Assembly: GCF_003918875.1 (NCBI RefSeq)
Contig: NW_025765052.1
Coordinates: forward strand, 124,001-188,000
Direction of reading: 5' to 3'
DNA length: 64,000 nt
DNA from: Haliotis rubra
Lineage: Eukaryota
A model generated the notes under the pieces. That model saw only the letters and a list, made by a program, of their open reading frames with translations. It made no database searches and was not told the DNA's origin. Position 1 is the first letter of the stretch. Each line of letters opens with the position of its first letter. The position numbers and the translations under genes are program-made. Positions 33,796-63,655 of this stretch are shown one piece after another.

Positions 33796-36700
33796 TCAAA
33801 CAACAAACTGTCCGAAGGTTGCCATAATCATCAAGGTCAAGACAGGAAGAGTAACCTGTCCCTGACCTGAGTGAAAAGGGAAAATGTCATCCAAGCCCCC
33901 AATGCTCTCGATACGATATTGTAGATACAAGCCCTGAAAAGGAAAGAACATGTTAGAGTACTTGAGAACCATAATCCCGCAGATAGAGCAAATACAATAA
34001 AAATGAAGTTGGATAAAGGACGCTACAATCATCAACCCCATGTTCAAGAAACATCGAGGTGAGGTGAGGTGAAATTGGGTTTAACGTCGTGCTTGAGAAT
34101 ATTTCACTCATATGACGACGTGCATGCGTGTGTATGTGTATGTGCGGCTGCTTGTAGTAGCCCAGACATAAACTGATTTTATAGTGCTAGCTCACTGAGA
34201 TACCATGCCGCAGTGAAGCATGAATACCCCACTCAGACACAGTATACTGACTCCAATCCGACCAGTCCTTGTTGTACCCAATAATGCCGAGCGCCAGGCA
34301 GGGACCACCAAGTACCATATTTTAACGTCTTTTGGTATGACGCTGTCGGGACATTTGAGATAGACACTCTTTTCAGAAGCCCAGCCTGGCTGGAGATTAA
34401 TTGTAAACAATATGCTGGGATTCCTATAATGATCGACCCCATATTTCACTGACATTAGTCGACAAGGTTTACACCATCTCAACTAGGACTGCGCAATATA
34501 ACCGGTTTACCGATATTTACCGGTTCAGGCGTGAAAACGATACGTATTGCGATACGCTGATCGAAAACCGGTATTTTGACAATCATCATGCATTCGGAAA
34601 ACTTCGTAACACTCGGAAATCTTCGGATATTTCCGTTTTTTAAATTGTTCCTTTCCTTGTTTCATTTGTGCCAAACATTATTTACATTTTTATTTTGTCA
34701 TGATTAAACGTTTTTATTAACGCCTTATCAAGCATAGTGACTTTGTTGTGTTTTTGCTTTGTAAATCAAGCATTAAACTCGATTATAAGTAACTTCTTTG
34801 AGAGGCAATTTAGAAGTTGGATAGATGAAGGAAAACCAAGTTCTATGGATAGTCAACTTCTTTATTGCAATGGGGGCGACGTTTCGGTGTAGGTACTAAC
34901 ACCGTTATCAAGCAAGTGACTTATTTGACTTGCTTGATAACGGTGTTAGTACCTACACCGAAACGTCGCACCCATTGCAATAAAGAAGTTGTCTATCCAT
35001 AGAACTTGGTTTTCCTTCGATTATAAGTATGTTTTTGCGAAAATAATTCCTGCAATATATTGCAATACATATCGCAATATATGCTTTCACATCGCAATAT
35101 ATCGCAATATGAAAATTCTCTGCAATACCCAACCCTAATCTCAACACAAAGTAAACTATAAATATATACCCAAAGGCGAGCGGAGTTACGATGTTGATGT
35201 CACACACAACACATGGATTAGACACAAAAACATATCTTTAAATTTGGGATTAGATACAGAAATGGTTATGTGTTTTTACAATAATCGACGCGTATTCGTG
35301 AATATGTTCTTCATCAGGTGGATAAGAGAGTATGTATATACTGTATTCCTCATAATATAGAAGCTGAAACCCGTAAAACTTTGTGTGAACAAAATTCATG
35401 CTACCCAACTTACAGTGAAGCCATTCTGATCCCCGCACCGGTTCGCTGTCACGAACCACCCAGAGCTGCTGTCGATGTCGATGTTGAACCTCCCGACACA
35501 GAAGACGTAGTCTCCCTTGAAGGCGTCGTAACGGTTGTAACATCCTGAGCTGGGTTTCGTGGTGTCCAGACTGAGAACCTGCCCGGAATAGGAGGGATAC
35601 TGCAGCAGGGCGATCTTCTGTTGACAGGACTGGAACATGGAAGTTTGACAGGCTTACAAAGACATCTGTCCTTGGACAGGTTAGAATATAACCATACTGA
35701 GCTGGGTGTCCAACAATGTGTGATTGGTTCTCCTTCATCTCCGTGTAGCAGGGCGTGGAGTCATCCCACAGATGACATACTTACCTTGTCAGGGTTAACC
35801 TCTTTAGTCATGTGGACAAGGCGTCCGACTTCTGATCAGAAGGTCCGTGGTTCGAATCCCAGCAGGGGACTCGGAAATGTTATGGACGCTACATCCGTAA
35901 CATATATTTAGCTTCACATGAATTTCCTTTAATGGTTGAATCTGTATGCTTTGAAACGATCCACATATGAATACACAATGGCATTTAGAAAGTGGTCAAA
36001 TGTAACACAAGTTATATTTGGGATTACACTTTCTTAGTAAAGTACACATTCTATTACTTTTATGGTTGTGTCCCATCCGGGATTCGAACCCACACCCTCA
36101 GAGTCAGGCACCTAATCGCCAGCATACAAAGTCCAGAGTCTAGACTACCACTTGACGACTTCTTTTTTTGTGGAAGCCGCGGTGACTGAGCGGATTAGGC
36201 GTCTGACTTTGCGTCCTGGCGACAAGGTGCCTGACTCTGAGGGTGTTGGTTAGAATCCCGGATGGGACTCAGCCCAAAAAAGTACAAGAATCTGTACTTT
36301 ACTAAGAAAGTGTAATCCCAAATATAACATCTGTTAGATCCACATTATTCATTTTGGATAGGTAGTTTGGTAGTACATCATTTGCTATTCCGGTACAAGA
36401 TGACAACTGATCTTATGGGTGCTAAACACCAACAATGTATGGCTCCTACTTCATAGAGAAATGTACATTTGTACTGGAATATTCTGTTGCATGTGGGTCG
36501 TATATTTGTTTCTTGTCTGCTTTTCCACAACATGGTGGAATTTGAATTTTCCAGTGGTCAGCAACCGTTATAATCAAAACACTTAAAATCAACTTCGACA
36601 CTTGCAAATGAAGACTTACTGATTTAAAGTGCCACCCACCTACATGTAAGTATCATCTAATCAGATGAAAGTATCATACTCTGTTTACAAGTACTGAATG

Positions 36701-39027
36701 TCTAACATTTTCTGGACATGTATCAGAACTTATAGATAGCTTTCGACAGCTCTAGCTGTGTTTTGCATGCATTGATTCTGTTACTCCAATGTACTTAAAA
36801 CAAAACAACTGTTTATTATAATTGGCTCATCTACAACGACTTACTTTGAAGGGGTCGTTGGCCTGCGCAAACTGATCGCCACCATAGAACAGAAGTTGCA
36901 AAGGAGCGTATTGCTGCAATACAAGAACATTCGAGAAAGCCACATGGTCAGTGAATCTTTAAGAAATCCAATTACACATATATATTTGAATATATTTGCA
37001 GCTGAACCGAAACTAGGTATGCTGTTCAGCGGAGCTGTGAGGAGTCAGTCACATATAGGCTTTTCTGAAGAAATATGTATCACAAATAGTATTACGATTG
37101 GCTAAAATGTGTCTGAAAGTATGTTTTTCAGGACGGGATGCTTTATTGGAAGTTAATTTAGACTTAACTGAAATACTAGTAGATACAGATGAAGCTTATG
37201 TAAACTTGAGTTGAACACATGCGGAATTTACCTTGAACAAATGTTTCTTCAATGTAACCATCCTTGTTTGACGTATAATGGTTTGGTTTGGTTGTTGTTT
37301 TAACACCGCACTCAGCAATATTCCAGCTATATGGCGGCGGTCTGTAAATAATCGAGTCTGGACCACACAATCCAGTGATAAACTGCATGGCCATCGATCT
37401 ACGCAAATGAGATACGATAACAAGTGTCAACCAAGTCAGGGAGCCTGACCACCCGATCCCGTTAGTCGCCTTTTACGACAAGCATGGGTTGCTGAAGATC
37501 CCATTTTTAGTCGCTGGTAATTTTACGACAAGCATGGGTAGCTAAAGATCAATTTTAACCCGGATCTTCACGGGTCTATCGTATAAGCTTGGTTTACAGT
37601 TGCTAGGCAAAATCTCTTTATCCTCCCTGAAGATAAGGCTGAAACCGTCTCATGTGATATATTTGTCGATGTCTTTACATATGAACGAGCACTGCACGAG
37701 GATATCTTCGCTTCTTTATATTTTCAAATTTAGAAAGAATTTTACCAATGCATAGTTTCTTTTTGTGCTAGTATTTTTCAGTACTTCTCACCGCGAGTTT
37801 AACCTTGCATTTGGTGACCTGGTAGCGTTGACGTGAATGGATAGTGGATGAACTTATCATTTTGTAGCTATATCTCAAAGAGGTTTCGAACCCGAGTTAT
37901 TTACGTGTCCTTTCATGGGAGATTTTGTACCTGAATAACTGCACATATAGGCTGAGTGACTTACCCTTGGATATGAGATGTTGTATTTGAATGAAGCACC
38001 GTCGCCGGCGGGGAAGAGAAAGCTGTCGAGGAAGACCCAACCCTGCAGTGGACAATCATGTAACAGCAAGGCATTCATTACACCCCCTGAACCCCACTTG
38101 AAGGCCATTTTGGAGAACAGCTGATACACCAGTCATATTGCTATAGTGGCTTCATTGGACTCACTCGATTCCCCACATGGGTACAAATGTGTGAAGCTCA
38201 TTTCTGGTGTCCCCCGCCGTGATGTTGCTGGAATATTGCTAAAAGTGGCGTAAAACCAAACTCAGTCAGTCAGTCATTGAACTCACGGGATAATAAAGGC
38301 AACCTGACGAGAGAGTAAGTGAATATTGCTTAACGCCGGATCAACAATGTTGCAGCCATTCACGACGAGAGATGTCATAAAATACAAAAACTGACTTTGA
38401 CATCAAATCGGTATTTTATCAAACAGTTTGATCTCTTTTAAATATGCGACGAGGTTCACATATAGTACGTTTAGTTCATAGAGATGTTGCGCAACCTATT
38501 ACCATGACATTTACAGTTATAAGCATTGGATTTAGCCTAACGTTTTAGAATTAACTCTGATTCCGAAAAATGATTCTACAAGAACCATGATTCAGTTATC
38601 GTGTTTGGTTTTCAAATGTTTCATTATGATCAGCTTAAAACAATGTCTCAGTTTATAGACAGAATATGAGGAAAGTCTTAAACGATGTAAATTTCACTTC
38701 ACTAAAACGAGGATTCAACATTAGAGCATTTATACGATGAATACAACTGAGCATATGCACTAGGTGCTCCTCAAACTCAACCGTCTGTGAGTTAACGCTG
38801 AAATAGGAACCAGTTATATTTTTGTAATCTCTGTGAACAGCGTGTACATCCAAAGGGCAGACTTCTGCTAAAATATTATTTGTCTTTCATGTTGAAACAA
38901 ATACCAATATTTCGCCTTGGATGGCACTCACCTTTAAAGAGACAATAGATCCTTCTGCGTATTTCCCTGAAATATGCGAAACACTGGTTAGTAAACAGCA
39001 GACAGCCAGCAGCCACACACCCGCCAT
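33796..39027 (-). CDS. TMEM145/GPR180 ectodomain-only protein, paralogue A, 198 aa, signal peptide + predicted GPI signal; exons 39027-38932, 38042-37965, 36913-36845, 35629-35414, 33933-33796
   Basis: Five phase-0 GT-AG exons give MAGVWLLAVCCLLTSVSHISGKYAEGSIVSLK|GWVFLDSFLFPAGDGASFKYNISYPR|QYAPLQLLFYGGDQFAQANDPFK|SCQQKIALL...QVLSLD...SGCYNRYD...VFCVGR...GWFVTANRCGDQNGFT|GLYLQYRIESIGGLDDIFPFHSGQGQVTLPVLTLMIMATFGQFVV*. It is colinear with the recalled TMEM145 N-terminal motifs (KYVRG..DWVFL..YP..LLY..DC..K..QVINL..SGC..C..WWY..CG..GL.LEY). Confidence 0.85.
34484..35137 (-). mobile_element. hAT-like MITE in intron 4 of paralogue A, carrying a nested insertion
   Basis: Same family as 7597-7964; exact 8-bp TSD ATCTCAAC at 34476-34483 and 35138-35145. 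Confidence 0.85.
34792..35016. mobile_element. Penelope-like inverted-repeat remnant with a hammerhead-like motif in each arm
   Basis: ~91-bp near-perfect inverted arms (34827-34917 and 34928-35018); 13-bp TSD TCGATTATAAGTA at 34779-34791 and 35017-35029; motif TTGATAA-c-GGTGT...ACACC-GAAAC-GTC followed by AATAAA. Confidence 0.6.
35798..35870 (+). pseudogene. tRNA-Arg-like relic or SINE head
   Basis: ...tggacaaggcgtccgacttctgatcagaaggtccgtggttcgaatccc resembles tRNA-Arg, but the stems contain mismatches. Confidence 0.45.
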
Positions 39028-39729
39028 CTTTATTTCCCAATGCCAAGGTCACGACGGTGTCTCTCCAATTTCATATCGGCTCGGCTCATGTCTCCACCCT
39101 TGCAATTACTGCCGTGCTGTTACAGGCTTGTTGTGACGATTATCTCGGTCAGGTGACTGAGCATCGAATCATACTTTTTGAAATTCTCTTTCACAATTTG
39201 CCCAATTATTTTACGTTGTGTGGTTTTGGTGACGCGCTGTTATATGTACAGAACACGACTACTTCTTGACGGTTCGAGGAAAAACTCTCAGAGGGGTCCA
39301 ACCTCCGACACATATTAGGGTGCAGTGTGTACAAGTGTGTGTACCTGTGTACCAGTCCCGTCTGAGGATAGGTCCATCGTTTTGTGATGCAGATACTGCT
39401 ATTAGGATAATTAATGTATGATACCACCAGGTCTTGTAACTATGGTCAGACAGCAAAGGATGTACACTGCCTAGATCCTATACATGGCAGCATCCTGTTA
39501 ATATTTCATATTTTGATATGAGTTTTGACAAATGTCCATACGCGATCATTATACCTCATTTAGTTTGACTGTATGTGTGCAAAACCGAATAAGCATTTTC
39601 CTCGTCAAGTCTCAGTGACGTGTATATCACAGATTCTAGACCAGACAGAGCAATGATTTAAAGTATAAATGGTTTATGTTAGGAAAGGTATTTTAACCTT
39701 AGCGCCGAGTAACAGAGCGTGTTTTAGCT

Positions 39730-40120
39730 CACACTTGAGCAGGACAGTGGCCCAGATCGTTGTTTAACCCACATATAAGTAGCACAGAACAGTGGACCAG
39801 ATGTTTGTTTAACCCACATTTAAGCAGCAAAATGGACCAGAGCGTTGTTTAACCCACATTTAGGCAGCAAAATGGACCAGAGCGTTGTTTAACCCACATT
39901 TAAACAGCAAAATGGACCAGAGCGTTGTTTAACCCACATTTAGGCAGCAAAATGGACCAGAGCACATTTAAACAGCAAAATGGACCAGAGCGTTGTTTAA
40001 CCCACATTTAAGCAGCAAAATGGACCAGAGCGTTGTTTAACCCACATTTAAGCAGCAAAATGGACCAGAGCGTTGTTTAACCCACATTTAAGCAGCCAAA
40101 TAGACCAGCGTGTTGTTTAA
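39730..40120. repeat. 40-bp minisatellite ~700 bp upstream of paralogue A
   Basis: Unit tggaccagagcgttgtttaacccacatttaagcagcaaaa, about 9 copies. Confidence 0.95.
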
Positions 40121-42045
40121 CTGTTGTCATACTCGTGGTGTTTAAATTGCTGCCAACGTCATGTCCATCGCTGTAGCAGCTAAAACCAAGTCCCACCATC
40201 GCAAAATGGGTGCTCAGTACATGTATTTGGTTATATTCATATGCAAACATGAAACACAAGTGTTTAGGGTTAATTAGGACACGTGTTAAAACTGTTATGT
40301 TAGCATATTCAGTTGATATGCCAGAGGTTCAAGCTAAAGAAGAGCTGCGATATGTGTGTTCCCGTACGAACCTTTGTCAAACCTGGTCTGGTGCGTCAGT
40401 ATGTCAAATACGGTTCGTCGAGCATTCCCGTTAGTTAGATGTGGCACCTTCCTTCTGACACAAGGTGCTGATTGTTATAACGAGCCTACATACACTATGT
40501 TCCCACAATATTAAAACTAAAAGTCTGTGTCGAAAATAAGCGTTATAAAATAATTTAGGATAAATCACAAGCAACATATTTCGAAAATCGAAAACAATGA
40601 TGATTAGGAGAATCTACAAGGTTTTGTAAAACTGTTTGTTTTCTACATAAATACATCCCCAAAAAATAATTCAAAAGCAAAATCACAATGCTTTAATGAA
40701 ATGTGTAGTGGTAAAGATAGTCTAGCGTGTGACTGGGTTAAACGCAAAAAAACGTCACAGCTCAAGTCTTTTCAAAACAATATTTGAAACGATAATTTAT
40801 GGCTAGAATATATTATCAGTTTTGAAAGTTAACAATGATGTATTTAACTGAAAGACTTTAAATCGAGATTAGCCATGACAGACAACACTGCATGTATCTT
40901 ATAGTCAGTATCCTCGTAAAGAAATCAAATTTCAAGAAACAGCACCAACACATGCATGTTCACATATCCAGGCTTTTTAACAGATTATAAAGGTTTATAA
41001 TTCCCTGGAAATACGAAGATGGGTTGAACTGGTCGTAGGTACTTTTAATGTGATGAGGGCTCATAATCAGATGAACCAGCTCTAACAATGTGAGTACTAA
41101 TTAAATACACGCTATGTATGTCATGTCGGCTTCAGGTCAACTCTCGGAATAAATTATGTGTTTTATGTCATCACTGGTTGCCGTATGCCTACTCAAAACC
41201 AACATGCATACACGTGACTGTGGACTTGTACAGACTATGTGTCTGTAAAACATGCTCTGCGTTAGAGTAATGTAAGCAAAATTAATGTTCAGTGTGGTAT
41301 TTCTATATGATTCGTACTGCGTAGTTCAAATTGTCAGTTTTGCAGACATTGAAAAAGGTATTTTCTTAAAATTCCTGAGCTTCCCTCCTTCCTGTAACGG
41401 GCGAGTTTGGTTACGGTCGCACCCGTGACTAGGAGTAGAGTACAGATTAAGGTATTATGACACCTGTACTGGTATATATGATAGCGCAATAGACTGTGAC
41501 CAGTCTCTCTTCATAGACAGTAGCGGACAGAAGGTAATGTGTCCATCAGTAGAACAATATGATACACAAGAAGATAATATATAAACATACTCAACGGGTA
41601 TCAAAGTGCAGTCTGGTTCCATTCTCGGTCCATTGAGAGATTGCAATCAGAGATGCTCAGTTGCTATTTTCACATTTATTGTACATCTTATCCTGCCGTG
41701 CATCTAGTCACAAGATAATGCGTAACTGGTACTCTTAGCGGGGCACTAAGATGACGTTATTGGCAAGGTAAGATGCTATGACTGTTTTCACAACATATCT
41801 AGACTACGAAAACGTATAGTCACTGAGAGAATGTATATACAGTAAAAGTAAACAGCATCAACAGTTTTTGGATACAATATTATGGAGCCTCTTAATATGT
41901 GTAGAATATTACAAAATCTGAATACAAATTTATAACATTTGTGTACAATATTATAAAATATGTGTGTATAATGTTATGAAATCTGTGTAAAATGTTTTGA
42001 AATATGTGTAAAATATGTATGTCTGTGTCAAAGGTTGGTAATATA

Positions 42046-43221
42046 TACTCTTCAAAAAAGAAACTTTACATGCCGTTTTGGAGTTTACTTACTGAGTGCA
42101 TATAATTGATTCAAACATGACATCATTGCTCAGTTACAGTAAAATCATCACTTTACAAATTTCCAAAATGTGATTATCGAGAAATTATCTTGTAAAACCA
42201 CAGAGGGCTATTAAAGCCAAGTGGTCAGAGTGAAATGTCAGTATCTGGTGTGACCACCATGAGCATCGATAACAGATTGGCAGCGGTGACCCATAGACGA
42301 AAGGAGATGCCGAATGCTGTCTTGAAGAATGTTTTGATGCACTTGCTGAAGTGCTGTGTGCAGTTCTTGTAGTGTCTGAGGTGGCGGATTACGCTGCACA
42401 CAGTTGGTATCCCATAGATGTTCAGTGGGGGGACAAATCGGTTGATCGAGAAGGCCAAGGTAGCACCTGAACATTGTTTTGATGGAGGAAGACCTGTCAA
42501 ACACGTGCAACGTGAAGTCGAGCATGGTCATGCTCCAAAGATCACGTTGATGTAGGGAACGACGTGACGTTGAACTGGTCTTCTGGCAAAAAGTCTGACT
42601 TTCCATAGCCAATTGCGCACTGTCTGGTCGGAGATTCGGAGCAGTCCAGGGATTTGGGTTGTTGTGGATGATGTGGCCGTGGTGTTTAAACGAAAATGTC
42701 TCAACCGGATGTAGCAATCCTGGGTCTGTAGCATGTAATGTAGCATGGGTCTGTCATTAACACTCCCAGTATTTTTGTATCGGGTCCATAGGTTTGAGAT
42801 GGTCCGTCTGGGCACGCTGAAGTGCCTTGCGACATCTTGCTGCGACGTCCGTCCTTGTAAACGGCCGATGGCGTTGTATCGTTGAGCTTCTATCAGTTTT
42901 TTCATTCTCTTGTCGTCTATAGTGGCTTAAAGCAATGCATGTGTAGTACCATTGATGTGGGTTTTTAAAGCCTACAGTCATAGGCTTCAGCTCAGGGTGA
43001 TATACAATTTCATGATGCTCGTGCTTCATGTAAGGTGCGTTTTAGCGATTCGTTACAGACGTGACTGTAACATTACGTTTTTGTTAAACGTTTCTTTTTG
43101 CAAACGTTTTGTTGTCGGCAACCCTTCCCCGACATGCTGGGATTCAGCACGGATTGGTTTGTGTCAAATATTTTCCTAAATTCATATTTTCCCTATGTCA
43201 AGTTTCTTTTTTTGAAGAGCA
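42046..43221 (-). mobile_element. Near full-length defective Tc1/mariner element
   Basis: TIRs tactcttcaaaaaagaaact / agtttctttttttgaagagca flanked by TA; frameshifted transposase from MKKLIEAQRYNAIGRLQGRTSQQDVARHF to IRHLLSSMGHRCQSVIDAHGGHTRY*. Confidence 0.9.
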
Positions 43222-44984: not shown

Positions 44985-45530
44985 TCTGATTTTATGTTCA
45001 GGATGTGTCAGGTGTAAGAATTGATTGACATTTAAATCTCTGATGATTATGCTCAGGATGTGTCATGTTTAAGAATTGCTTGATATGATTGATGATTACG
45101 TTCAGGATGTGTCATGTTTAAGAATTGCTTGACATGTCAATCTCTGATGATTATGTTCAGGATGTGTCGGGTTTAAGGATTGCTAGACATTTCAATCTCT
45201 GATGATTATGTTCAGGATGTGTCAGGTTTAAGAATTGCTTGACATTTAAATCTCTGATGATTATGTTCAGGATGTGTCAGGTTTAAGGATTGCTTGACAT
45301 GTAAATCTCTGATGATTATGTTCAGGATGTGTCAGGTTTAAGAATTGCTTGACATTTCAATCTCTGATGATTATGTTCAGGATGTGTCAGGTTTAAGGAT
45401 TGCTAGACATTTCAATCTCTGATGATTATGTTCAGGATGTGTCAGGTTTAAGAATTGCTTGACATTTTAATCTCTGATGATTATTATTATGTTCAGGATG
45501 TTTCGGATTTACGGATTGCTTGACATTTTC
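44985..45530. repeat. 55-bp minisatellite just upstream of the membrane-protein CDS
   Basis: Unit gatgattatgttcaggatgtgtcaggtttaagaattgcttgacatttcaatctct, about 10 copies. Confidence 0.95.
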
Positions 45531-45647: not shown

Positions 45648-47142
45648 ATGAACAAGCTGTACGTTCAACTGCTGGCGCTCAACTCCGCCATCGTCGTCCT
45701 CTTTATTGCTGCCATCACCGTCTTCATCGCCGGCGTATACAGCCATGATCGAGGTACAGAGAGCGAGGGATCATAGACGAGTTTCAGTATATAGTCGCAT
45801 ACCGATATGCCGAACAAACTTTGATGTGTCGAACATATGGTTCTCTCGAATTAAAAGCTTCGTATCTGCGTACTTCGACAGTGTTATTTTGAATGTGTGG
45901 CGAACCTCGGACAAGTCGAAGTGTTCACGGAGGTTCCTTCAGCTTCGACACAACAGTGTTTGACTATAGTTACACCTTCGGGTTTGATACTGTCTTTACT
46001 AGCCAACGTATTGGATAGCCGAGGCAAAAACAGTACGGCTGTCTCTCTTTACCATGACAAGAAACTAACAAAAAGACTCATCTTTAATAATGGCTGCCAT
46101 AACTCTTTATATTGCAAGAAGTTATATTGCATTAACAATTGTGCCTTCATGGCGTCAAATAGATCTGTGTTCCTTGTCAATAGTGTGCGTGTATTGTTAT
46201 GGTTTTAAAGCCTCACATATTCTGTGATTATATTATAAAATAATAATAAATAATTTCCGACTTAACGACGTATATATTTTCATAGTTCCAGCACTGCAAG
46301 ACCATGTCCCCGTGTTAGACGTCTACCCAGCCCGCTGGACACTGGTCATTGCCTGGTTCGTCTATTCCTGGCAGGTCAGCTGGATCATCTACTCCCTGAT
46401 CCTTGTGTGTAGGTCCAGCCCCCATCCAGTCCTGCTGACTCCCCTCTTCCTGGGCATCTACATCGTGGCGCTTGTACTCCAGATCATCATCAACTCAGTA
46501 GCCTTCACGGACATCGTAACCGTGTCATTCATTGCTCTGCTTCTCATATCCGTAGCTCTGTTCGGATGTCTGGCCCTGTCCTACATAGCTCTGTACCAGC
46601 ACGGAACCGTTCTAGTCCAACAACATCGCAGGGTGGACGACGCTCTCATCAGAGGGCTGGTACAGAATGGAATAGCCTTGTACGCTACATGGACCTCAAT
46701 GGCTGCCTTCATCACGATGGCCGTCTTGATGGTTTACCGATCTGATCCAACCATCAACCAGGCAACTGCTTCCTCTGTGGTCCTCGCCTTCATCGCAGCC
46801 TTCCTAGTAGTCTACAGCATCACCGATCTGATTGTCCTGGACAAGTACTCCCGCTACACCTTCACCCCCTACGCTGTCATCTTATGGGTCTTGATCGGTA
46901 TCCTTGTCAGTCTGCCTGCAACGAATGCTACAAACTTCATCTTCGCGGCTGTGCTGTTGGGGGTAGCTATTGTTGCTCTGAGTGCGAAGATAACCCTGGT
47001 TGTTGTCAGAAGGAAGGCCGACCCTGTCTTGGCTCGCTTGTCTGCGGGTGAGAGCGCGCATGGGATCGAAACGGGAAATGCAACCAAACCGGAAGTTTCA
47101 AAACCGGAAATACCAAACCGGAAATACCCAAACCGGAAGTAG
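45648..47142 (+). CDS. Uncharacterised ~8-TM membrane protein, ~320 aa, exons 45648-45753 and 46286 (or 46292)-47142
   Basis: Exon 1 MNKLYVQLLALNSAIVVLFIAAITVFIAGVYSHDR has a phase-1 donor that joins in frame to ORF 46312-47142. About eight hydrophobic segments. Motifs YPARWT..AWFVYSWQ and LVQNGIALYATWTS resemble a widespread uncharacterised 'PAGWTFSIWG.IY' membrane family (from recall). A possible non-coding exon ends at 44178 (GTAAGT). Confidence 0.85.
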
Positions 47143-51665: not shown

Positions 51666-54600
51666 CTAGGCTAAACACTGTTTCAGCACAAGGAAAGGAA
51701 TCAAGGTCAAGGCCGTGAACGTGGCCTTTGATTGGCCGGAATATGTTGGGAAGACAGGGTACCGGGTTGTCTCCCCTTCCCTCTCCTCCGTGTTGTCGAT
51801 GTAGTACCACGTGTCCATGCCCTGAAGTTGGAGAGGAAGACGTTATGGTCAAGACCGTTAAATACCCTCTTGAATTGAAGTAGTAGATGCATCCATATAA
51901 CGACTTGCGATTATGTATGCATAATATAAATATTGTATGATGAATAGTGTCTGCGTGGAAAGAATTATAATCTTTGCTGTTATGTTAATATTTGCATAGC
52001 GCCAATATCCAGCTCAGACGCTCAAAGGCGCTTTGTTTTTCCCTCAATCACTGGATGTCAATCTCAGGCGGCACATCGCATTATCAATCTCAACTTCCTG
52101 GAGATCATGCAGCAAGCAAATTGGTTTCATTTAACTGAACACGAAGAGTGGTCGTAATAGGTCAAATAGGCATGATGTAACAACATAATTTGGCATATAC
52201 TTTCTTAGTTACGTACAAATTCTGGTAATTTGGTGTTGTCTGTTCAAATGTATTTTTCTCCTAAGGATGCTGTGATGATGTACACCTGTCAGAGGGGTAT
52301 ACAGAGTACTTGATCTAGGCAACAGGGGACGAACTTTCATTTTCACCCAAGGATATGTAATAGAATGTACTTGGCAATGTGCAATCCCAAATGTGACATG
52401 TTTTACGAGTCGTCAAGTCATGTCTATGAGTGTGGTGAGGTTTTGAATGTACACTGCATAGACAAGTATTTCAGTTGGGCCATTTTGGAAAGCCCGATGG
52501 GGACAACATCGGAAGTGATGATGCTGAGGACCATGATGCTGTCAAGTACTGTATCAGGATCATTGTGATTTAGAAGTCTCTGACATAACTGAAGGACTTT
52601 CTAGCAAGAGCACCCGTGAAGATCCAGGTTAGAATTGGTCTTCAGCAACCCATGTTTGTCGTAAGAGGCGACTAATGGGATCGGGTTGTCAGATTCGCTG
52701 ACTTGGTTGACACATGTCATCGTATCCCAACTCCATAGATCGATTCTCATTTTGTTGATCATTGGATTGTCAGGCCCAGACTCGATTATTTACAGTCCAC
52801 CGTCATATAGCTGGAATATTGCTGAGTGCGGCGTAAAACAACAAGCAAACCAAAACTCTAGCAAGAGCGCAGCGAGTTGTCCAATGTTGTATTTCTGGGA
52901 TGGAACCAATGGATCGTCACATGGTTCATCTAGATTCAAGTCTCAGCATTCCATAGTGTTACGTATTACACATCGTATAGCGCTGCAGCCAAAGCGCTGA
53001 ATCCAACTATCAATTATCTGCAACCCCCATCCGGTAAATGAAATAGATATGAACATGTGTATATACATCGTTCTGACATTGGTCAAAAGCTGGAAAAGGT
53101 GTAGTACGTACCGCGATACCGTTCATTGCGCCGCACCGGTTGGCCACCACGTACCACATCATACCACGATCGACGTTGAAGGTGACGCGGCCGTTGCAGG
53201 TGACGCTGTCCCCCATGGTGGAGTCGTAACGCTGCATGCAGCCAGCTTGGGTCATTCCAATGTCAAGGTTGAGGACTTGTTGACCACTGCCGGCGAATTG
53301 TAGAACCGACAACTTCTCCTCACAAGACTGTGATATAAAGGAAATGTACAGGGATGGATGATCAAGTTGTGAAATGCCACTTTGGGAACTACGTCAGTTG
53401 AGTTGGAGGAAAGCGTTAATGGATGTCCTAAACGTTTTAACACTTTCGTATAATAATGGACAGATACGTTACGGACAAGACTAAAACAGAATCCGGGCGA
53501 AGCGCGATTCAAATCATTGATGATAGTTTCCTGTCACACGTAAGGGACACAACTCTGAACACAGGCAGGATACTTAAACCGTCATCATGCATCGTTAATA
53601 TTAGTTTGGGCAAAGTGGTGTCGCCTAAATATTTTCTTACATTATTCCATTGTGAGGTAAACTCTTATATTTTACCAGGTGGGGTAGCCTGTGGTTAAAA
53701 CGTTCGCTCGTGACGCCGAAGACTAGGGTTCGATTCCCCACATGGGTACAATGTGTGAAGCCCATTTCTGGTGTCCCCCGTCGTGATATTACTGGAATAT
53801 TGATAAAAGCTGGCTTCACACATTGTGCATGTGAGGAATCGAACCCTGTAATATGGCTATAGCTAGCTAGTGAGTGGGTGAGTGAGTTGGGTTTTACGCC
53901 ACTTTTAGCAATATTCCCGCAATGTCACGGCGGAGGACACAGGAAATCGGCTGCACACGTTGTGGGGAATCGAACCCTGGCGATCGGCATGTAATATGGC
54001 TAAAAGCGGCGTAAAACAATCCCCACTTTACAGAACAAAGACGAGTATAGAACAGAACAGGGTGCAGTTGACTGATACTCCCATACACTGCAGCAGACTC
54101 ACCTTGGTTCCTTCGTTAGCCTGGAAGAACTGGTCCTGTGTGTAGAACAGGAACTTCATGGGGCTATAACTCTGAAAGGAAAGAAAATATTAATAGGACT
54201 TAGATCGTTCAATATATTAATAGTAGTAGATCATTCAAAAGAAATTATTTCCATAAATCGATTCATTTGATCATATCGGAAGCGATGGACAGCGTATTGC
54301 CGCGACATGAACGACTGGAACCGTCGTGCGCTTATCGCGACATCCTACACACCCCGGCTTTTTCAGGAAGCCGGGGTACTGTAAGCCCTCCATGATACCC
54401 AGCCAATTGGCCAACTTTGTTTTTTGTTGGCTTATAACCCGTGTTTTAAACAGTTATACAAATATTGCTATGTTTGAATTCGTACAATGGATGTGCTTTT
54501 GAATATAACACTGTGTTTGTGTTCATTCACTTGTTAATGTGTAAATGTATCAGCTTGGTGTCGCTTTATGGCTGAAAAGACGCCGATGCGACGTTACATT

Positions 54601-55912
54601 TTAACTCACTCACTCTGACTCCATTGTTTCTAAACTATTTAGTTCAACGGTACCTGGATTTTTCTTTAACTTACATGTTTGTTTTTTTTATAAATTTAGA
54701 CAAAAGTCCTTATATTCATTAACATAATGTAAGTGTGATATTACACCCCGCTTCCTTCATCACGAATGTGTTTCTACGAAAAGCGGTTGCATCGTTCATT
54801 GTTCATCTGTGAGAACTTCACTGACACATACAGGTGGAAATATTTATTATTTATTGGTGCGTTCTTACCCGAGGAAACGTGACGTTGTAGTTGAAACGAA
54901 CGTAGCCGGAATCGAAAGTCCACGTGTCGATCAACTGCCAGTCCTGGAAGGGATATAGGAACATAGAAGTTTTGTAATATGAAGAGCGACCAATTCAAAC
55001 TTTTCACATTTGACAAATTGCAGGTCCAATCATTGACGTTTTCACGTTTTTCACAAGATGGCAGGCAAGAACGTAGCCACAACAGAACAGTTCACATAAT
55101 CGTCCACCACGAAGTTTGAAAATAAAAGCATCATTGTTTATGAGACAATAGAAATAAATCATTACATGCAATCAACTGACCCTATCTATCTCAAAAACAG
55201 TATTTCCGTTCACATTCGGCCACAGTAGGTCCCATAATGTTGTTGGACTTACGTTTATAAAGCATGGCCATTTAGCAATCATTGGAGGACTTTGAAAACT
55301 GCATAATACATATAGCGCAATAAGCTTCAGAACAGACCCTTGCAGACAATTGTACTACCTTTAATGTGAATATATATATCACAAATACTCACATAACGTT
55401 GGTGCTATAAAACATTTCTAAGCAACTGATGAATATGACTGATGTCTATTAAACGTACGTTTCTTAAACTTTCAGTTACCGTGTCTCGAGTTCACTCCAA
55501 GCTGCTTCCATCTGTTATCATAGTACAAGAGTGTACAATCGTCCATGATTGGCTAGGAACGAGAGGTGCTAGCAACGATGCATTTGGGTTCGATATCTGT
55601 GGTGTTTTGGTAACAAATACATTACTGTCACGACCCAAACACTTTGCAAAACATTCCGGCGTGGAAAGTACTGCCCAAACACCTAACGTGTACTTTCTTT
55701 TTTACCTCAGTCTATCATACGAAACATAAGACCTTCATCATTCCAGACGTTGGGAGAATTTCAGGCCGGAAAGTTAATCTTCCAGACATAATCAATGTAT
55801 ATTAGATACTTACACTAGCTGTTTGGAGCCTACGCTGAGCGACTTTGTAAGTAGCCGACGTGAAGGATGACAAGCAGAGGACACACAACATGGAGAGAAA
55901 GACAGCGGCCAT
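51666..55912 (-). CDS. TMEM145/GPR180 ectodomain-only protein, paralogue B, 204 aa, signal peptide + predicted GPI signal; exons 55912-55814, 54943-54869, 54171-54103, 53327-53112, 51821-51666
   Basis: Phase-0 GT-AG exons give MAAVFLSMLCVLCLSSFTSATYKVAQRRLQTAS|DWQLIDTWTFDSGYVRFNYNVTFPR|SYSPMKFLFYTQDQFFQANEGTK|SCEEKLSVL...WYVVANRCGAMNGIA|GMDTWYYIDNTEEREGETTRYPVFPTYSGQSKATFTALTLIPFLVLKQCLA*. Exons 3 and 4 have the same lengths as in A (69 and 216 nt). Confidence 0.88.
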
Positions 55913-55963
55913 CTTGACGTTTCAAAGTTGATCCCGAAATGTGGCGTCTTCAAGCGACCCGTC

Positions 55964-55969
55964 TTTATA
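55964..55969 (-). promoter_or_regulatory. Putative TATA box of paralogue B
   Basis: TATAAA on the minus strand, about 52 bp upstream of the ATG. Confidence 0.35.
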
Positions 55970-56891
55970 AAGGCAACATTCTACGTGAAAAGTCAACACT
56001 TCCTTTGTAAGATGTAACAGTTTTGTCATGTGTAGCGAATGCTCTGCTAATAACTAATTTGTATGTATCGCATGAAAGAGTTGCTGTCAAATTATTGTCA
56101 ACAAAATCAGGCTGGGTATGTGAATGTCAAATAATAAGACTGTTTGTTGGATTGATAACGTTGCCCCTGTCCAATTAGATACAAACAAGCTTGTTATGAT
56201 TGGTAGAGTAGTTTTATGTTGTGCTTGAAAGTTAACACGTCAGTACACCTAAGATGTTATTGTTGTTTTACCTGTAGGTGGCCTTGTGTATGTTTCGGTA
56301 TATACACATCCAAACAAGAATTGATATATGCCTTTCCGTAGACCAACATCTAGTCTCTGACATGAACATATTTTACAGAAAAAACGTTCCCTAAAATTAT
56401 TATCATAAAATATAATGAAAAAGAGTCCATTGACTTTTTTCATTTTTAGAAGCTGGTAATCTAGACTTGCCACATATTCTAGACCTATATGGGATTTCTT
56501 TGGTATATTTGTCTCAGGTTTTGTATGACAGACTAGCCTTATTGGTAGGGCAGCATATGCTTTCACAGACTTTAACTGAACTGTTCATGTACTTTATACC
56601 ACTACCTTGCCCTTTACTGGAGCTGGAATAAGCAGAATCTGCAGATTATCTAGACTAGTTATTCCCTGGCGTTATATTTACAGGCAAATCACCAAGAAGG
56701 GTGGTGGAGTCTAGTGGAGAAAGCGTTCGCTCATCACGCGGAAAACATAGGTTCGGTTCGGAGTTTCCATGATTATATATCATGGTGGCGTCATGAGGAG
56801 GACACGGAAAAATGACACGAAGCGGTATCTTGACAGTCTGTGGTCTTTTAAAACACTAAGATTTGTGTAATGTTACTGTTTCTTATATAAG

Positions 56892-57383
56892 TACACTCTT
56901 AAATAAACCCGTATGGGCGTTTTCAGCAGTTTATTTCAATATATTTTGACAGCGATCGTCATTAAGTCAATTCCTTTGTTTGAATCCCGTTAATCGTGTC
57001 TTGGTTGTTGTCTATTGCGCGCAAACGCATCCCAAAACGTGTTTGTTATCGTTTGTCATAAACAATGTGCATGCAGAAGGAGTTTTCCACGTAGTGCACG
57101 TGCATGTGTTGGACACATGAGTCGAGACATCGACTATAAACGGCCGAACCAAATTCATCATTTTATTTTGAAACTTAAGACGCAGACGCAGATCACAAAT
57201 GCCAAGATTGAATACTGCTGACTGAAATATCGCCACTGGACGTTTGGAAGCAGGGAGTCCCAGTCAGTCGTTGCAAGACACTTTCCTCCATCTATGTTCA
57301 AGCTTAATCGATTTATGCACACCTAAATACGCTTAATACATTTCCATATTTTGACCTATGCGTTTCTTTTTTTGAAGAGTGTA
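56892..57383 (+). mobile_element. Internally deleted Tc1/mariner derivative
   Basis: TA-CACTCTT...AAGAGTG-TA ends; the left 400 bp is homologous to 13450-13850 and stops within the transposase start. Confidence 0.8.
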
Positions 57384-57559
57384 AGACCTTGTGTCGTTAT
57401 GACAACGTCTACTGGTCGCTTGACGTTTTTCAGCAGTTTTACGTTCGGCTGTTTCTGTAATATTACAACTTGGAATACAAAACCCCCCAAAACTTTGCTC
57501 GTTCATGTCATTAAATTTCAATAAAATTTCTTTTATCTAGTGAAATTTCTTCTTAATCT

Positions 57560-58090
57560 ATTATTTACACAGAGTGCCATTAAAACCGCTTCGCAATATA
57601 TATTGGTACATGGAATGCAAATATATTTTTTTTCATGTTATCATATAACGACATGAAATGCCATTATATTTACGTCTTAATATATTATTACACGGAATGC
57701 CAATAAAACTAAATATCAATATGTTATTACACAGAATGCAATTATAATTACTTCTTAATGTATTATTACCAATAGAGTTATTATTATCATTGTATTATTA
57801 CACGGAATGCAAATATAACCGTTTCTTATTATTATCGCATTACACGGAAGCCAATTATTTTTACTTCTTAATGTGTTATTACATGGAATACCAATAATGT
57901 TATTCTTATCATTATGTTATTACACGGAAGCCAAATATAAATACTTCTTAATGTATCATTACATGGGATGCCAATGCAGTTATTCTTATCAGTATTGTAT
58001 TACACGGATTTCAGTCTACTTCCAAATACAAATGGAACTTATTTTTATCATTATATTATTGCCTGGATGCCTAGAAAATCATACCTCTTA
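57560..58090. repeat. Degenerate AT-rich tandem repeat
   Basis: Recurrent tattacacggaa(t/g)gcca motif every ~40-45 bp. Confidence 0.7.
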
Positions 58091-60500
58091 ATAAATAAAT
58101 ATATTCTTAATTATGAGTAAGTCTGAGAGTGAGTGAGTGAGTGTGTGTGAGTGAGAGAGTGGGTGCGTCTGTACGTAGATGCGTGCGTGGGTGCCTTCGT
58201 GCGTGAGTGAGTGAGTGAGATCAAAACAATCCAGCAGACTCAACTGACAAAGCAAGTTGGTACATTGGTATATTATAAGTTTGACTGGATGGACTGTTCA
58301 GACTGATATGTTAGTATATGACAGTCGACTGACACTTGATGGCGACTATATCTTCCCACGTTTTGCCAAAGCGCCCTACAACACAAGCTTTGTTTCAGAA
58401 AATATCGGCCTTGGAAGTTGAATGAGGTCTTATTTGTTTCATTTGGAAGTTTCTATTTCACAATACACAAACGAAAAGTGACATTTTAAAATACGTTTTT
58501 TCATTTTGAAAAATGCAAAAAATATGTTTTAAAGTAGACTTATCAGGTGTTGACATGATCCAAATTGTTTTGTTTTTTTCGCATCAAGGTATAGGTGTTA
58601 GTTAGAACATAATTCGAACTACTCAGAGTGTAGAATATGGAACACTGAGGGATTTAATGTCACTTAACAAATTTGAAAGTAAACTGCGTTCTATGTTTTC
58701 TATATGATGTATGATAATATTATAATATTGACCACAACTTTGATCATCTCATTAGCCCAAGTATATGTGTACGTATGAATCAGAGACAAAGGGTAGCATG
58801 GAGATGAGGTGTCCGCTCGTCCCGATGTAATTCCGGGTTCGATGTAAATCAGTTTTTGAAATTACCATACCGTCATTAATTGATCAATGATTTCAGTGCA
58901 GTTCATGATTTCATCGAACACACCGGAATGTCTTTCATTTCGGCCTAAAGTACCGAATACCTTAATTACTGTACTGAAGAAAATTAAGTCAGAATTGCAA
59001 GGACATTCGTGCAGACCATCATTTATCATGCCTCTCGATGATGGTTTGGGACATCATCTTCTTCGGTCATGTGACTGTCTACAAGTAGCTGTCAGGAGTT
59101 GTTATTGTGGATTTGACCAACCAGTCATAGTCGAACATGTTTCATGGTGGTATTTTACATCATACGTTGTATGCTTCTCTCGAGGTAACACGGTCTGTTG
59201 CACGCCTTTTTGTAGCAGTGTCACCCGAGCCGTATTTATCTTACCGCCATCTTAAATGTACAAAATATGTATCACTTTGTTCTATTTTCAAGATCGATAA
59301 GGTCGTTACCGACTATATAACATATAAACAAAATGGCGTCTGCCTCTCGACTGTTTTTTTTTAAAATCAGTGAAACATATTCAGACAAGCTGAAAACTGC
59401 TTAAAAATTATCCGTGATTTCATAAAGAGTTATCTAACATGACTGCAGCATTTACCTTTTTAACATGAAATCCTTGATCGCTGTCTACTACCCTTGCTGA
59501 AATTAAAGACAATCTGCAATTCTTCCATCACCTTTTCCATGACCAAACTGTTCGCTGAACACCGAATCTTTGTCTTGTCACTATGTACATAAGGCCGCAC
59601 GTTCAAATATATAGGTAGATAAAGAGACTCTAGAGCTGAGATTACAGTCGTTCCTCTGAAACGTTGTGTTAAAGCAACAAAGTTGTCACCCACGACACTT
59701 GGGGGGTGGGGTAGCTTAGTGGTTAAAGTGTTTGCTTATCATGGTTCTATTCCTCATTTTGTAGCTCGTTTCTGGTTTACACCGCCCTGATATTACGGGA
59801 ATTCCCCGACCGCGTCATACCAAAAGACGTTAAAATATGGTACTTGTTGGTCCCTGCCTGGCGCTCAGCATTAATGGGTACAACAAGGACTGGTCGGCTC
59901 GGAGTCAGTATAATGTGTCTGAGTGGGGCATTCATGCTTCACTGCGGCATGGTATCTCAGTGGGCTAGCTCTATAAAACTACCTTAAGTCTAGGCTAGTA
60001 CAAGCAGCCGCACATACACATACACGCGCATGCACGTCGTCATATGAGCGAAATATTCTCAAGTACGACGTTAAACCCAATTTCACCTCACCTCACCTCA
60101 CCTATTACGGGAATATTACGAAACCTAATTCACTCATTTGGCATGGACTTATAAAGTACACGGTGCTTCATTCATTGTAAACATGTGGTGGAACTGTCGC
60201 CTTCTGAACGAACGTTTCAACTAACACACATGTTTATGTATGTGACTGGGTGACTGTTGTTTTATGCTAATGTCAGAAATATTCTAGCTTTTTCACAGCC
60301 TCGGACAGACCAATCATATTGAAGAATGTTGTTGTATGATGAAGTCCTCGACATATTCCGACAGTGGGTAATTAAAGGATCAAACACGCTCATGATATCA
60401 CCCACCGGTTTAGCAGCCTGAAGCATGATAATTTACAGCCCGGTGTGATATTGTTGTCATTCATGGACTGTGCGACAACATTAACAATTCTCCAGAATAA

Positions 60501-61010
60501 GGGGGCGTGGTGGGCGAGCTGGCTAAGGCGCCAGGCTACTGATCCAGCGAGTATGAGGTGCCGGGATCGAGCCCACCTTTGACCGTGTGTAAAAACCTTG
60601 GAGTCAGCTTTGTGTGCAGACTCTTTCAGTGTTGTCACAACCCCTAGTGTACAGTAGACTTAAAAGAACCCACGAATCCGTTGATATATGACCATATTGT
60701 GGCCACATGAATACGTGCAAACACCTAGTTGAGGGTACAGCAACGTGCAGAATACTTGGACAAAGTACTGTGACTATGTGTCCCAGTCCACCCAGCTGTG
60801 AATGGGTACCTCGTGAGGATGGGAAAGCCACATTAACCCGGTGCGCCTTGTGGCAGCACGAGTTGTATGCTCCCCAGGGAGTTGAGATTGATAATGAGAT
60901 GTGCCGTTGAGATTGACATCCAATGATCGAGGGGAAAAGATACCAGCGCCTCGAGCATGCACAAGTACCTGGTTATGCGCTCTATATAAATATCCAAAAA
61001 TAATAATAAT
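60501..61010 (+). mobile_element. Composite tRNA SINE (family E) with Deu/Nin-like and CORE-like domains and an L2-type tail; 3' fragments also at ~24552-24730(-) and ~51990-52110(-)
   Basis: tRNA head at 60501-60585; ggagtcagctttgtgtgcagactctttcagtgt; tccacccagctgtgaatgggtacc; tail agcgcctcgagcatg...gcgctctatataaat(AAT)n. Domain names are from recall. Confidence 0.7.
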
Positions 61011-62562
61011 GATCAACAATCGGTCCAGTCAAGGTACGACCATAGTTATTCTATTCAAACATTTAGCAAACAAAACAGGGCCCCGATCCACAAAAGCGTT
61101 CGTAACGTTACGACCTATCGTAACTCATAGACTAATGTAGTTGTGGTGCTATAACGTTTTGTAGATCGGAGCCCAGGTCATTTACTCGAACACAAACTTA
61201 GATGGTGGTTGTGGATTGGGTTTAACGTCGTGCTTGAGAATATTTCGCTCATATGACGACGTGCATGTGTGTGTATGTGTATGTGCGGCTGCTTGTACTA
61301 GCCAAGACTGAAGCTGGTTTTACCATGCCACAGTGAAGCATGAATACCCCTCTCAGACACATTATACTGACTCCGAGCCGACCAGTCCTTGTTGTACCCA
61401 TTAATGCCGAGCGTCAGGCAGGGACCAACAAGTACCATATTTAACGTCTTTTGGTATGACGCGGTCGGGGATCAGACCGCGACCTTCCGCACTCCGGGCG
61501 GACGTTCTAACCACTACACCACGGAGGCGGTCCACAATCTTAGAAGTTACGATAGCAACATGAAAGAATCCATAAACTCCTTTTACTAGCATGCCAGTGA
61601 AGACCAACTGGATATGGGAGTATTTGAATATGAATTGTGAAATAATTACTGTATTTGCTTCACATGTAACGGTTGTTTTTGACATGAAACAAAGTAAACA
61701 CAAATAAACCCGGAATTGTCAAAATTATTTTTATTGCTCAGCTATCAATAATGAACGTTCTTCATGATTAAAATGCAAGAACATTCAAAATGAATGTATA
61801 ATGCTGCCATGCCGTTCCGCAGTCAGTCGCCATGGTGATGGTGACGTCACACTGCAAATACTAATCACACGACTGAAGGCAAGCGATTATGCTATAGGAA
61901 AACTACTCGGTTATCCACAACTTAGAAATATTGGTACAGCTTGCAGAAGTTGAGAAAACTCGTCAGGGGATAGGTCCTTCGTTACTCAAACATATTAAAC
62001 GCATTAACTGACGTCCTCCTTCTAAATATCCCTGGGCTAAAGAGTATGTATAATCTGGTAGCAAAACTTAAAATCGTAGACCACACCACGACATAAGAAC
62101 AACTGATGTGTAGAAAACGTACAAATACACCCCCATCCCCTTAAAATTAGAGAAAAAATTGAAATAAAAATATAATGATAAAATACAACGAAATAAATAA
62201 AACAATTAATAGGAACTGCAATTATCCCATGTTTATGCCATTTACAAAATAATAATTTGTTACCGTTTGGTACATAAAAAATCATATCAATGCCTTGCCT
62301 CCTTATGGGAGCCCTCCACTGGTCCTATTTATCATTTAAGCAGATGTTTGCAAATGCAAAAATACACAATAATAACACATACAGATGTAAGTTACACAAT
62401 GGCCGACCGAGGCTGGTTCAAAAAGTTTAGCTTACAACTGTTATCATATCGATGTAAGTGCTTGAAAGACTGTGAAACCGCAGTTCAGATTTTAGCTTTC
62501 GAACGACAGTCAATATGTGAAACGTTTGTGTAACCTTCTTGTATTCACAGGAGCTGTCAGGT

Positions 62563-63655
62563 CTATGCGAGGCATTGTTTTAGGACAAGGAAGGGGACTA
62601 AGGTCAAGGCAGTGAACGTTGCTTTTGACTGGCCGGAGAACATAGGGAAACGAGGGTCGTTGTTCATCTCGCCCATGTTGTCGATGTAGTACCACATGTC
62701 CATGCCCTGCAGATGGAGAGAAAGACGTTCATAATTTTTTTAGAAATGTTCAAGCATATTTAATATTGTCCCAGAGTGTTCTGGAATGTTCAAGTATATT
62801 TAATAATGTTCAAGCATTACACATGTTCAGGCATTAATTAGACGACGTTCTATAAAGTGTCAGTTTAGTTTACATTTCACAAACCAGCGTCTCACAAATA
62901 AAAGTAAAATGTCTACAGTACATTGTTTTTTTATGAGTTAGCGAACACATAAACAAAGCTCCACAGTAGGTGTCGACGTAAACCTTCACATTTTTCTTTA
63001 AAAAAAATTTCATTTTGCGATATAAATGTATTTTAGCTACACTATCAAGTATACAATTTAAAGCTTGGTCACTAATCTTTAATTCCAGGGACAAATTTCA
63101 ACAGTTTGCTGGTTGTCTGAACCTATAAACATACATTGGTTCAGGGTATGATAGGTTAATGCTCTCTGAATCCATCCTTTAACACAATATTTCGTCCTCA
63201 CACAGAACACCGATACACAATAATATAAGAAAATGGACATGTGCGTTTTGACAGAATAATCTCCAGTGTAAACCCAAACGTGGTCAATGAACTTTGGTTT
63301 AAATATTAAATGATTGCCACAACATACCTCCTGGAGAAACAAACAAAATATACAAGCAAATAAATGCATCCTTATTCTCGTGCGAACACATTATTATTTT
63401 CACATTCAACCTGAAATATTATTTGGATGCAACACGTACCGTAATCCCGTTCATCGCGCCACATCGGTTGGCCACCACGTACCACATCATACCACGATCG
63501 ACGTTGAAGGTGACACGGCCGTTACAGTTGACGCTGTCCCCCATGGTGGAGTCGTAACGCTGCATACAACCAGCTTGGGTCATTCCAAAGTCTAGGTTGA
63601 GGACTTGTTGACCGCTGCCGGCGAATTGTAGAACCGATAACTTCTCCTCACAAGA
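62563..63655 (-). CDS. TMEM145/GPR180 ectodomain-only protein, paralogue C, last two exons (63655-63440, 62706-62563); 5' exons lie beyond the right edge
   Basis: The 216-nt exon is 69/72 aa identical to paralogue B. The last exon encodes GMDMWYYIDNMGEMNNDPRFPMFSGQSKATFTALTLVPFLVLKQCLA*. Splice sites are canonical. Confidence 0.88.

Follow-up and report, generated by a model that had tools for sequence, protein, structure and literature searches.

The GOST proteins (TMEM145, GPR180, TMEM87, GPR107/108 and Wntless), in which a luminal GOLD domain precedes a seven-transmembrane (7TM) region, are poorly understood, and their labour is thought to be divided between a GOLD domain that recognises cargo or ligand and a 7TM part with lipid or trafficking functions. 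A stretch of 64,000 nucleotides from the abalone Haliotis rubra (positions 124,001 to 188,000 of contig NW_025765052.1, RefSeq assembly GCF_003918875.1; hereafter the window) raises the question of what a GOLD domain does on its own. A first-pass annotation, made from the sequence alone, had described here three same-strand paralogues, which we call genes A, B and C, and had read their products as TMEM145/GPR180-like proteins that stop where the 7TM region should start. Our analysis indicates that these tandem genes encode secretory proteins of ~200 aa that most likely arose as partial duplicates of TMEM145, and we think it probable, although by no means certain, that they present a GOLD domain, tethered by glycosylphosphatidylinositol (GPI) or shed, that binds an extracellular partner.

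The genes were located from stop-free frames carrying the noted motifs, and exon borders were then set from the DNA. All three are tandem paralogues on the minus strand (contig QXJH01001143.1 of assembly GCA_003918875.1), and their exons are all in phase 0 and bounded by canonical AG and GT splice sites. In gene A, exon 1 (38932-39027, 32 aa) holds the start codon and signal peptide and runs to a KYAEG motif, exon 2 (37965-38042, 26 aa) carries a GW.F motif, an NIS sequon and YPR, and exon 3 (36845-36913, 23 aa) an LFY motif. Exon 4 (35414-35629, 72 aa) contains the core of the TMEM145_N domain with all four invariant cysteines, and exon 5 (33796-33933) encodes the last beta-strand, the stalk, a candidate omega site (SGQG), the hydrophobic tail and a TGA stop. 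Gene B follows the same plan: exon 2 (54869-54943, 25 aa) has a DW.L motif, an NVT sequon and FPR, exon 3 (54103-54171) encodes 23 aa, exon 4 (53112-53327, 72 aa) is the TMEM145_N core and is 100% identical to P0001, and exon 5 (51666-51821) supplies the stalk, an SGQS site, the hydrophobic tail and a TAG stop. Its exon 1 (55814-55912, 33 aa, start codon and signal peptide), absent from the RefSeq H. rubra model, was located by tblastn with the H. cracherodii orthologue P0003 (88% identity). For gene C, exon 4 (63440-63655, with 69/72 residues the same as in B) and exon 5 (62563-62706, again with stalk, SGQS site, hydrophobic tail and TAG stop) lie within the window; by analogy with the 775-nt intron 3 of B, which we used to place exon 3, exons 1-3 must lie beyond the window end at base 64000.

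The spliced products of A and B are 198 aa and 204 aa long, and 31/72 residues of exon 4 are identical between them, so that the five phase-0 exons, the shared strand, the protein lengths and the exon 4 count of the first-pass annotation were all reproduced from the DNA. The RefSeq protein XP_046543428.1 (P0004, 'uncharacterized protein LOC124253655') does not differ from our model of A. Gene B corresponds to LOC124253675, for which the H. rubra RefSeq model is N-terminally truncated and begins within exon 3 (142 aa). Since RefSeq models in three Haliotis species show the same structure, the gene structure is not due to chance. A tblastn search found no further GOLD-only copy in the 64-kb window. 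Past the stop of gene A there is an ATTAAA after 7 nt (33784-33789, minus strand) and an AATAAA hexamer after 101 nt (33690-33695, minus strand); an AATAAA occurs 518 nt past the stop in B and 828 nt past it in C, all of these being consensus matches only.

The predicted proteins A and B share a simple layout, namely a signal-peptide-like N-terminus, one TMEM145_N domain, a predicted flexible stalk of ~15 residues and a hydrophobic tail of ~22 residues followed by the stop, and each has one N-glycosylation sequon (NIS in A, NVT in B). Against the Pfam profile PF21892 (TMEM145_N; gathering cut-off 28.1 bits), A scored 59.3 bits over profile positions 2-128 of 131, and the H. cracherodii orthologues of B and C scored 68.9 and 71.3 bits; exon 4 alone gave 24 bits for A and 35 bits for B and C. 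In an alignment of 41 family sequences, the cysteines C83, C111, C125 and C146 of A are invariant. An AlphaFold2 model of A built from this alignment (mean predicted local distance difference test score, pLDDT, 85.8) consists of a signal-peptide helix, a beta-sandwich at residues 23-164, a low-confidence stalk (166-180) and a helix (181-197). Its best matches among AlphaFold/Swiss-Prot models were TMEM145 of mouse, Xenopus and human (E 1.7e-12 to 8e-8, top TM-score 0.64), with GPR180, GPR107 and p24 proteins lower down, the last at E ~1e-3. Among solved structures, the GOLD domain of GPR180 (9FOW) was the best match (Z 11.1, 122/134 residues; next Z 8.3), recovered by VIA re-alignment after plain Foldseek against the PDB had placed generic jelly-rolls on top and missed it; the GOLD domains of SPF and p24 gave Z 7.4-7.9 against the same model, and a profile search of PDB sequences returned chance matches only. 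On the strength of the PF21892 scores and of the fold matches in AlphaFold/Swiss-Prot and to 9FOW, we regard the assignment of a TMEM145-type GOLD domain as solid, for a domain predicted from sequence and model. The proposed homology to the TMEM145/GPR180 luminal domain was thereby borne out by the Pfam and Foldseek checks that had been suggested for it, and the four conserved cysteines, the sequons, the signal peptide and the hydrophobic tail were all present as described. In contrast to TMEM145, no match to PF10192 (GPR180-TMEM145_TM) or PF06814 (GOST_TM) was found in the GOLD-only proteins.

How, then, would such a protein be held at a membrane? All seven Haliotis proteins carry an SG[QE][GS] site in which the Gly lies exactly 22 residues from the C-terminus. 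This candidate omega Gly has G or S at omega+2 and is followed by a hydrophobic run with a mean Kyte-Doolittle value of 2.2-2.6, which spans 19 residues in A and ~14 in B and C; the polar or charged end does not exceed five residues (in B and C it reads KQCLA), and a cytoplasmic domain is absent. The spacing of 22 residues is fixed in paralogues that are only 37% identical, which argues for its importance. The tail thus fits a textbook GPI signal, from which we infer that the tail would be exchanged for a GPI anchor in the endoplasmic reticulum (ER) and that the GOLD domain would be displayed at the outer leaflet of the plasma membrane, or shed. Of the GPI-anchored appearance claimed by the first-pass annotation, the small-residue site and the hydrophobic stretch were found by a rule-based check, whereas the anchoring itself stays at the level of a prediction.

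The hydrophobic stretch could instead be kept as a short membrane span. The product would then be a type I protein that all but lacks a cytoplasmic tail and whose GOLD domain is fixed to the membrane by a peptide helix. This arrangement would account for the helix modelled at residues 181-197 of A, where the uncharged stretch extends over 19 residues, and for the family alignment, in which the tail stands opposite the start of the first transmembrane helix (TM1) of TMEM145; a chiton relative (P0027) is moreover a true single-pass protein. However, the stretch in B and C comprises only ~14 hydrophobic residues, is broken by Pro and lacks a basic stop-transfer flank, and the small-residue site held at 22 residues from the end is needed by a GPI signal but not by a transmembrane helix. 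We therefore consider a retained membrane span unlikely, while giving it more weight than any other alternative.

What a tethered GOLD domain might do is suggested by work on TMEM145 itself. Stereocilin is bound by the GOLD part of mouse TMEM145 in isolation, and a TMEM145 construct retains this binding without its 7TM part but not without its GOLD domain (PMC12789471). Recognition of ligand or cargo is also the role generally ascribed to GOST GOLD domains (PMC11605061, PMC9711517). By analogy, a lipid-tethered or shed GOLD module with an extracellular protein ligand would be the most economical reading of the Haliotis genes. The domain would bind its partner without trafficking mediated by a 7TM region and without a link to the cytosol, and the protein would act as a membrane tether, a co-receptor or a decoy. 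Nothing in the analysis spoke for or against the chemosensory role that the first-pass annotation had listed as an option. It is also conceivable that the proteins act in the lumen of the ER or Golgi, as soluble or lipid-tethered cargo adaptors rather than at the cell surface. Most GOST and p24 proteins serve in Golgi/ER trafficking (PMC11605061, PMC9711517), TMEM145 promotes the secretion of stereocilin (PMC12789471), and our model of A gave weak fold matches to p24 GOLD domains. Set against this, the Haliotis proteins lack a KDEL-type retrieval motif and, having no cytoplasmic tail, also lack a cytoplasmic COPI/COPII motif. GPI-type signals, in addition, normally deliver proteins to the cell surface, and we judge a luminal role to be distinctly improbable.

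Orthologues in two further species allowed us to ask whether A, B and C are maintained. All three copies are full-length in H. cracherodii, at 200 aa (A), 204 aa (B) and 201 aa (C), and H. asinina has A (200 aa) and a B-like protein of 238 aa; exact spliced mapping recovered the five exons, unchanged in length, in both genomes. Ratios of nonsynonymous to synonymous substitution rates (dN/dS), estimated with dS by the Nei-Gojobori method, were 0.14 for A between H. rubra and H. asinina (dS 0.26), 0.16 for B between H. rubra and H. cracherodii (dS 0.43) and 0.11 for exons 4-5 between B and C (dS 0.57). Exon 4 of B and C shows 93% nucleotide identity, while intron 4 is essentially unalignable, and the stop position and the tail are kept in all seven Haliotis proteins. 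Because dN/dS lies at 0.11-0.16, the exons were kept while the introns diverged, and stop and tail are conserved, A, B and C are, as judged from sequence comparison, maintained coding genes under purifying selection in three Haliotis species and not decaying fragments. The earlier description of an old, maintained family rather than truncated pseudogenes agrees with these low ratios and with the conserved frames, and its supposed lineage specificity has also held, the family having been found by sequence searches only in Haliotis so far.

The genes might nevertheless be dead relics of partial TMEM145 duplications, or artefacts of gene prediction without function. A sceptic could point to the Logan transcript contigs, none of which carries the Haliotis GOLD-only proteins (the set is uninformative here, since none carries Haliotis TMEM145 either), to the N-terminally truncated RefSeq model of B and to a very long stem branch in the family tree. 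Relics or artefacts, however, would not be expected to keep their frames, splice sites, exon lengths and stop position in three species at dS 0.26-0.57, or four invariant structural cysteines in exons whose introns have diverged past alignment. This explanation is thus largely refuted, and we regard it as very improbable.

The absence of a 7TM part extends from the proteins to the surrounding DNA. When 13 full-length TMEM145 proteins, among which the 7TM region is well conserved, were used as tblastn queries, no 7TM sequence was found in the 64 kb, and only the GOLD exons 2, 4 and 5 were matched; with the negative Pfam result, this upheld the view that the proteins lack a 7TM part and stop where it should start. 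The proteins end after ~200 aa in three Haliotis species, and the RefSeq models stop at the same position. Downstream of A lies a Kringle gene, downstream of B a gene on the opposite strand and then A, and downstream of C lies B; both H. cracherodii and H. asinina keep this order. The Kringle gene (~23796-26082, minus strand), annotated with Kringle/Sushi domains, is the first one past A on the same strand, and H. cracherodii has a Kringle gene at the corresponding place. Full-length H. rubra TMEM145 (P0097) is encoded on a separate contig, QXJH01000691.1. We found no plausible splice donor in exon 5 that is common to A, B and C. Exon 5 of A holds a phase-0 CAG|GTTACT near the position of TMEM145 intron 5, which we considered as a relic donor; TMEM145 intron 5 is, however, in phase 1 and the GT is missing in B and C, so that the site is merely suggestive. 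That A, B and C are only the 5' parts of ordinary 7TM genes, with exon 5 an alternative terminal exon and the main isoform spliced to 7TM exons elsewhere, is hardly credible, for although the site in A might have served as the donor, its GT is not shared by B and C, 7TM-coding sequence is nowhere in the window, the next same-strand gene in all three species is a GOLD-only copy or the Kringle gene, and the RefSeq models finish at the same stop.

The intron positions bear on where the short genes came from. H. rubra TMEM145 has a first exon of 99 nt and a second of 75 nt, the same as in B, and its introns 1-3 are in phase 0 and at the same places as in the short genes: the first precedes [DG]W, the second follows YP. 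and the third comes ahead of the first conserved Cys. The fourth intron of TMEM145 is at most two codons away from theirs. The end of TMEM145 exon 5, just past FSADEF, falls in the alignment at the SGQGQ/SGQSK site, at which the short proteins begin their tail. Two tested members of another clade of TMEM145_N proteins without a 7TM region have, by comparison, intronless coding regions. In a maximum-likelihood tree, the Haliotis proteins formed a clade (100/100) within the 7TM TMEM145 clade, among molluscs. The tree favours an origin from 7TM TMEM145 but was not taken as proof, because an approximately unbiased (AU) test did not reject a grouping of the Haliotis proteins with the other non-7TM clade (p 0.18), and more weight was given to the shared introns. 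Mainly because of these introns, we propose that A, B and C most likely arose by partial, DNA-level duplication of TMEM145. Such a duplication would have retained TMEM145 exons 1-5 and recruited a new 3' end at about intron 5 or TM1, and the tail would derive either from a TM1 remnant or from read-through into the former intron 5. The RefSeq protein for H. rubra TMEM145 (P0097, 516 aa) itself has exon 4 replaced by tandem-repeat sequence (L002, ~12297-13100); its residues 83-115 match many repeat copies, the conserved Cys-bearing exon of H. rufescens P0075 is missing, and exon 4 is probably mis-modelled or mis-assembled.

Several observations weigh against our reading of the proteins as tethered or shed binding modules descended from TMEM145. 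The Haliotis proteins have lost the canonical RFCF Cys of TMEM145, so the binding surface may have changed. The GPI signal was judged by a hand-made, rule-based check, and the hydrophobic stretch of B is short (~14 residues) before it ends in KQCLA. The Haliotis clade stands on a very long stem (2.28) in the tree, the alternative grouping was not rejected by the AU test, and the Logan contigs yielded no transcript.

Comparison with known systems places the proteins closest to TMEM145 (PF21892 plus PF10192), with which they share the homologous N-terminal GOLD-like domain, the four cysteines, the K[YW].EG and [DG]W.F motifs and the introns described above. Unlike TMEM145, they lack the 7TM region and the cytoplasmic tail and end at about the start of TM1; they are only ~22-25% identical to it, sit on a very long branch without the RFCF Cys, and occur as three tandem short copies, in contrast to the separate full-length gene on another contig. 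The GOLD domain of GPR180, the best solved match (root-mean-square deviation 3.0 A over 122 residues), is only 15% identical to the Haliotis protein, is fused to a 7TM domain and has a different disulfide pattern (PMC11605061). The p24/TMED proteins resemble the Haliotis proteins in having a luminal GOLD beta-sandwich of similar size within ~200 aa, with a signal peptide at one end and a membrane anchor (a predicted one in the Haliotis proteins) at the other, as well as in the weak fold matches. They differ in possessing a coiled-coil, a true transmembrane helix and a cytoplasmic COPI/COPII motif, whereas the Haliotis proteins have no cytoplasmic tail, match PF21892 and not the p24 GOLD family (no p24 Pfam match) and show no sequence similarity to it.

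TMEM145_N domains without a 7TM region also occur in other invertebrates. An exhaustive HMMER search of 1.84 billion representatives returned only two clusters at E < 1e-10, both from Haliotis, together with ~40 distant relatives, including others that lack a 7TM region: two-domain proteins with GPI-like tails, a single-pass chiton protein, a Ly6/uPAR fusion, an immunoglobulin (Ig) protein and single-domain open reading frames (ORFs) of ~200 aa. Examples are Intoshia linei OAF70446.1 (labelled 'GPR180-like N-terminal domain-containing protein'), Liolophura sinensis LOC135462770 and the Logan proteins P0030, P0032 and P0034. Many of them share a signal peptide and a GPI-signal-like tail with the Haliotis proteins, but most fall in a separate clade (100/97) with a WYGYLAN-type motif, extra cysteines and often two tandem domains. 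Set beside that clade, the Haliotis genes appear to have been truncated separately and at a later time, although common ancestry is compatible with the AU test. P0030 and P0032 are each a complete ORF with non-coding sequence on either side, and the ~1-kb contigs that carry them are probably transcripts. The separate clade comprises P0005, P0007, P0008, P0010, P0014, P0022, P0043, P0027, P0032 and P0040, from an orthonectid, a chiton and unidentified invertebrates, and many of its members have two tandem domains and a GPI-signal-like tail; we found no publication on it. P0034 (279 aa), a Logan transcript, fuses TMEM145_N to a Ly6/uPAR three-finger domain with a GPI-like tail, and P0016 from Batillaria attramentaria (983 aa) continues from TMEM145_N into Ig-like regions and a single transmembrane helix.

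Full-text literature searches likewise turned up no paper dealing with proteins that have PF21892 alone, with GPI-type GOLD domains of the GOST group or with Haliotis TMEM145. The first-pass remark that no description of such a family was known agrees with these searches, but needs to be narrowed, as the genes were already in RefSeq as 'uncharacterized protein' and the architecture is not unique to abalone. Since it also occurs in other invertebrates, the stand-alone TMEM145_N architecture has originated, or survived, on more than one occasion and is undescribed in papers.

A further gene in the window accompanies the GOLD-only genes. Between B and A, at 45648-47142 on the plus strand, lies a gene for an uncharacterised membrane protein of ~320 aa with eight predicted helices, which is kept in the same place in three Haliotis species (the listed loci being L003 20170-21795, L004 4828-6254 and L006 1663-3137). 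In H. cracherodii a paralogue that is 51-52% identical to it sits upstream of C, and because of this a multi-transmembrane gene paired with a GOLD-only gene seems to have been the ancient duplication unit. We considered whether this neighbour could be the 7TM half of a 'split' TMEM145 and rejected the idea, since BLASTP found nothing and hhalign gave a probability of 0.1% against the TMEM145 7TM domain. The eight-helix protein has no Pfam match, its AlphaFold2 model from four sequences was unusable (pLDDT 49), and from the Atlas it looks like a member of a TspO/DUF1774-like animal family; a functional link with the GOLD-only genes is possible but unsupported.

Elsewhere in the window, repeated ORF fragments recur in introns and spacers on both strands (~33299, 34299 and 37364 on the minus strand; 43789, 50750, 52773 and 59856 on the plus strand; 61249-61401 on the minus strand). 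They are of two kinds, a GPDSIIY...YSWNIAECGVK type and a AWRSALMGTTRTGRLGVSIMC type, and look like dispersed transposable-element or short interspersed nuclear element copies. Positions 7106-7364 are 259 N, an assembly gap or masked stretch.

Going further, one could picture the abalone proteins as a natural 'delta-7TM' TMEM145, GPI-tethered adaptors that hold a secreted matrix or link protein (a stereocilin-like partner) at the cell surface, or vie with full-length TMEM145 for it, whose genes were co-duplicated with a paralogous pair of TspO/DUF1774-like eight-helix genes and stayed beside them because both kinds of gene act jointly, and that would form, together with the tandem TMEM145_N clade, an unrecognised class of invertebrate GOLD receptors. 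We offer this extended picture as speculation and consider it improbable.

Taken together, our results describe a GOLD module that appears to have been separated from its 7TM partner in nature and maintained by selection. The impact of this is limited by the fact that the genes are so far known only from abalone and that other non-7TM TMEM145_N proteins were already present, unremarked, in databases. Even so, the family would be a clean example of how a multi-pass gene, cut at an intron and given a GPI-signal-like end, may become a new surface protein. A GOLD-only protein would in addition provide a small, soluble and easily expressed handle for finding the ligands of TMEM145-type GOLD domains, and its maintenance suggests that the domain can work without a 7TM partner.

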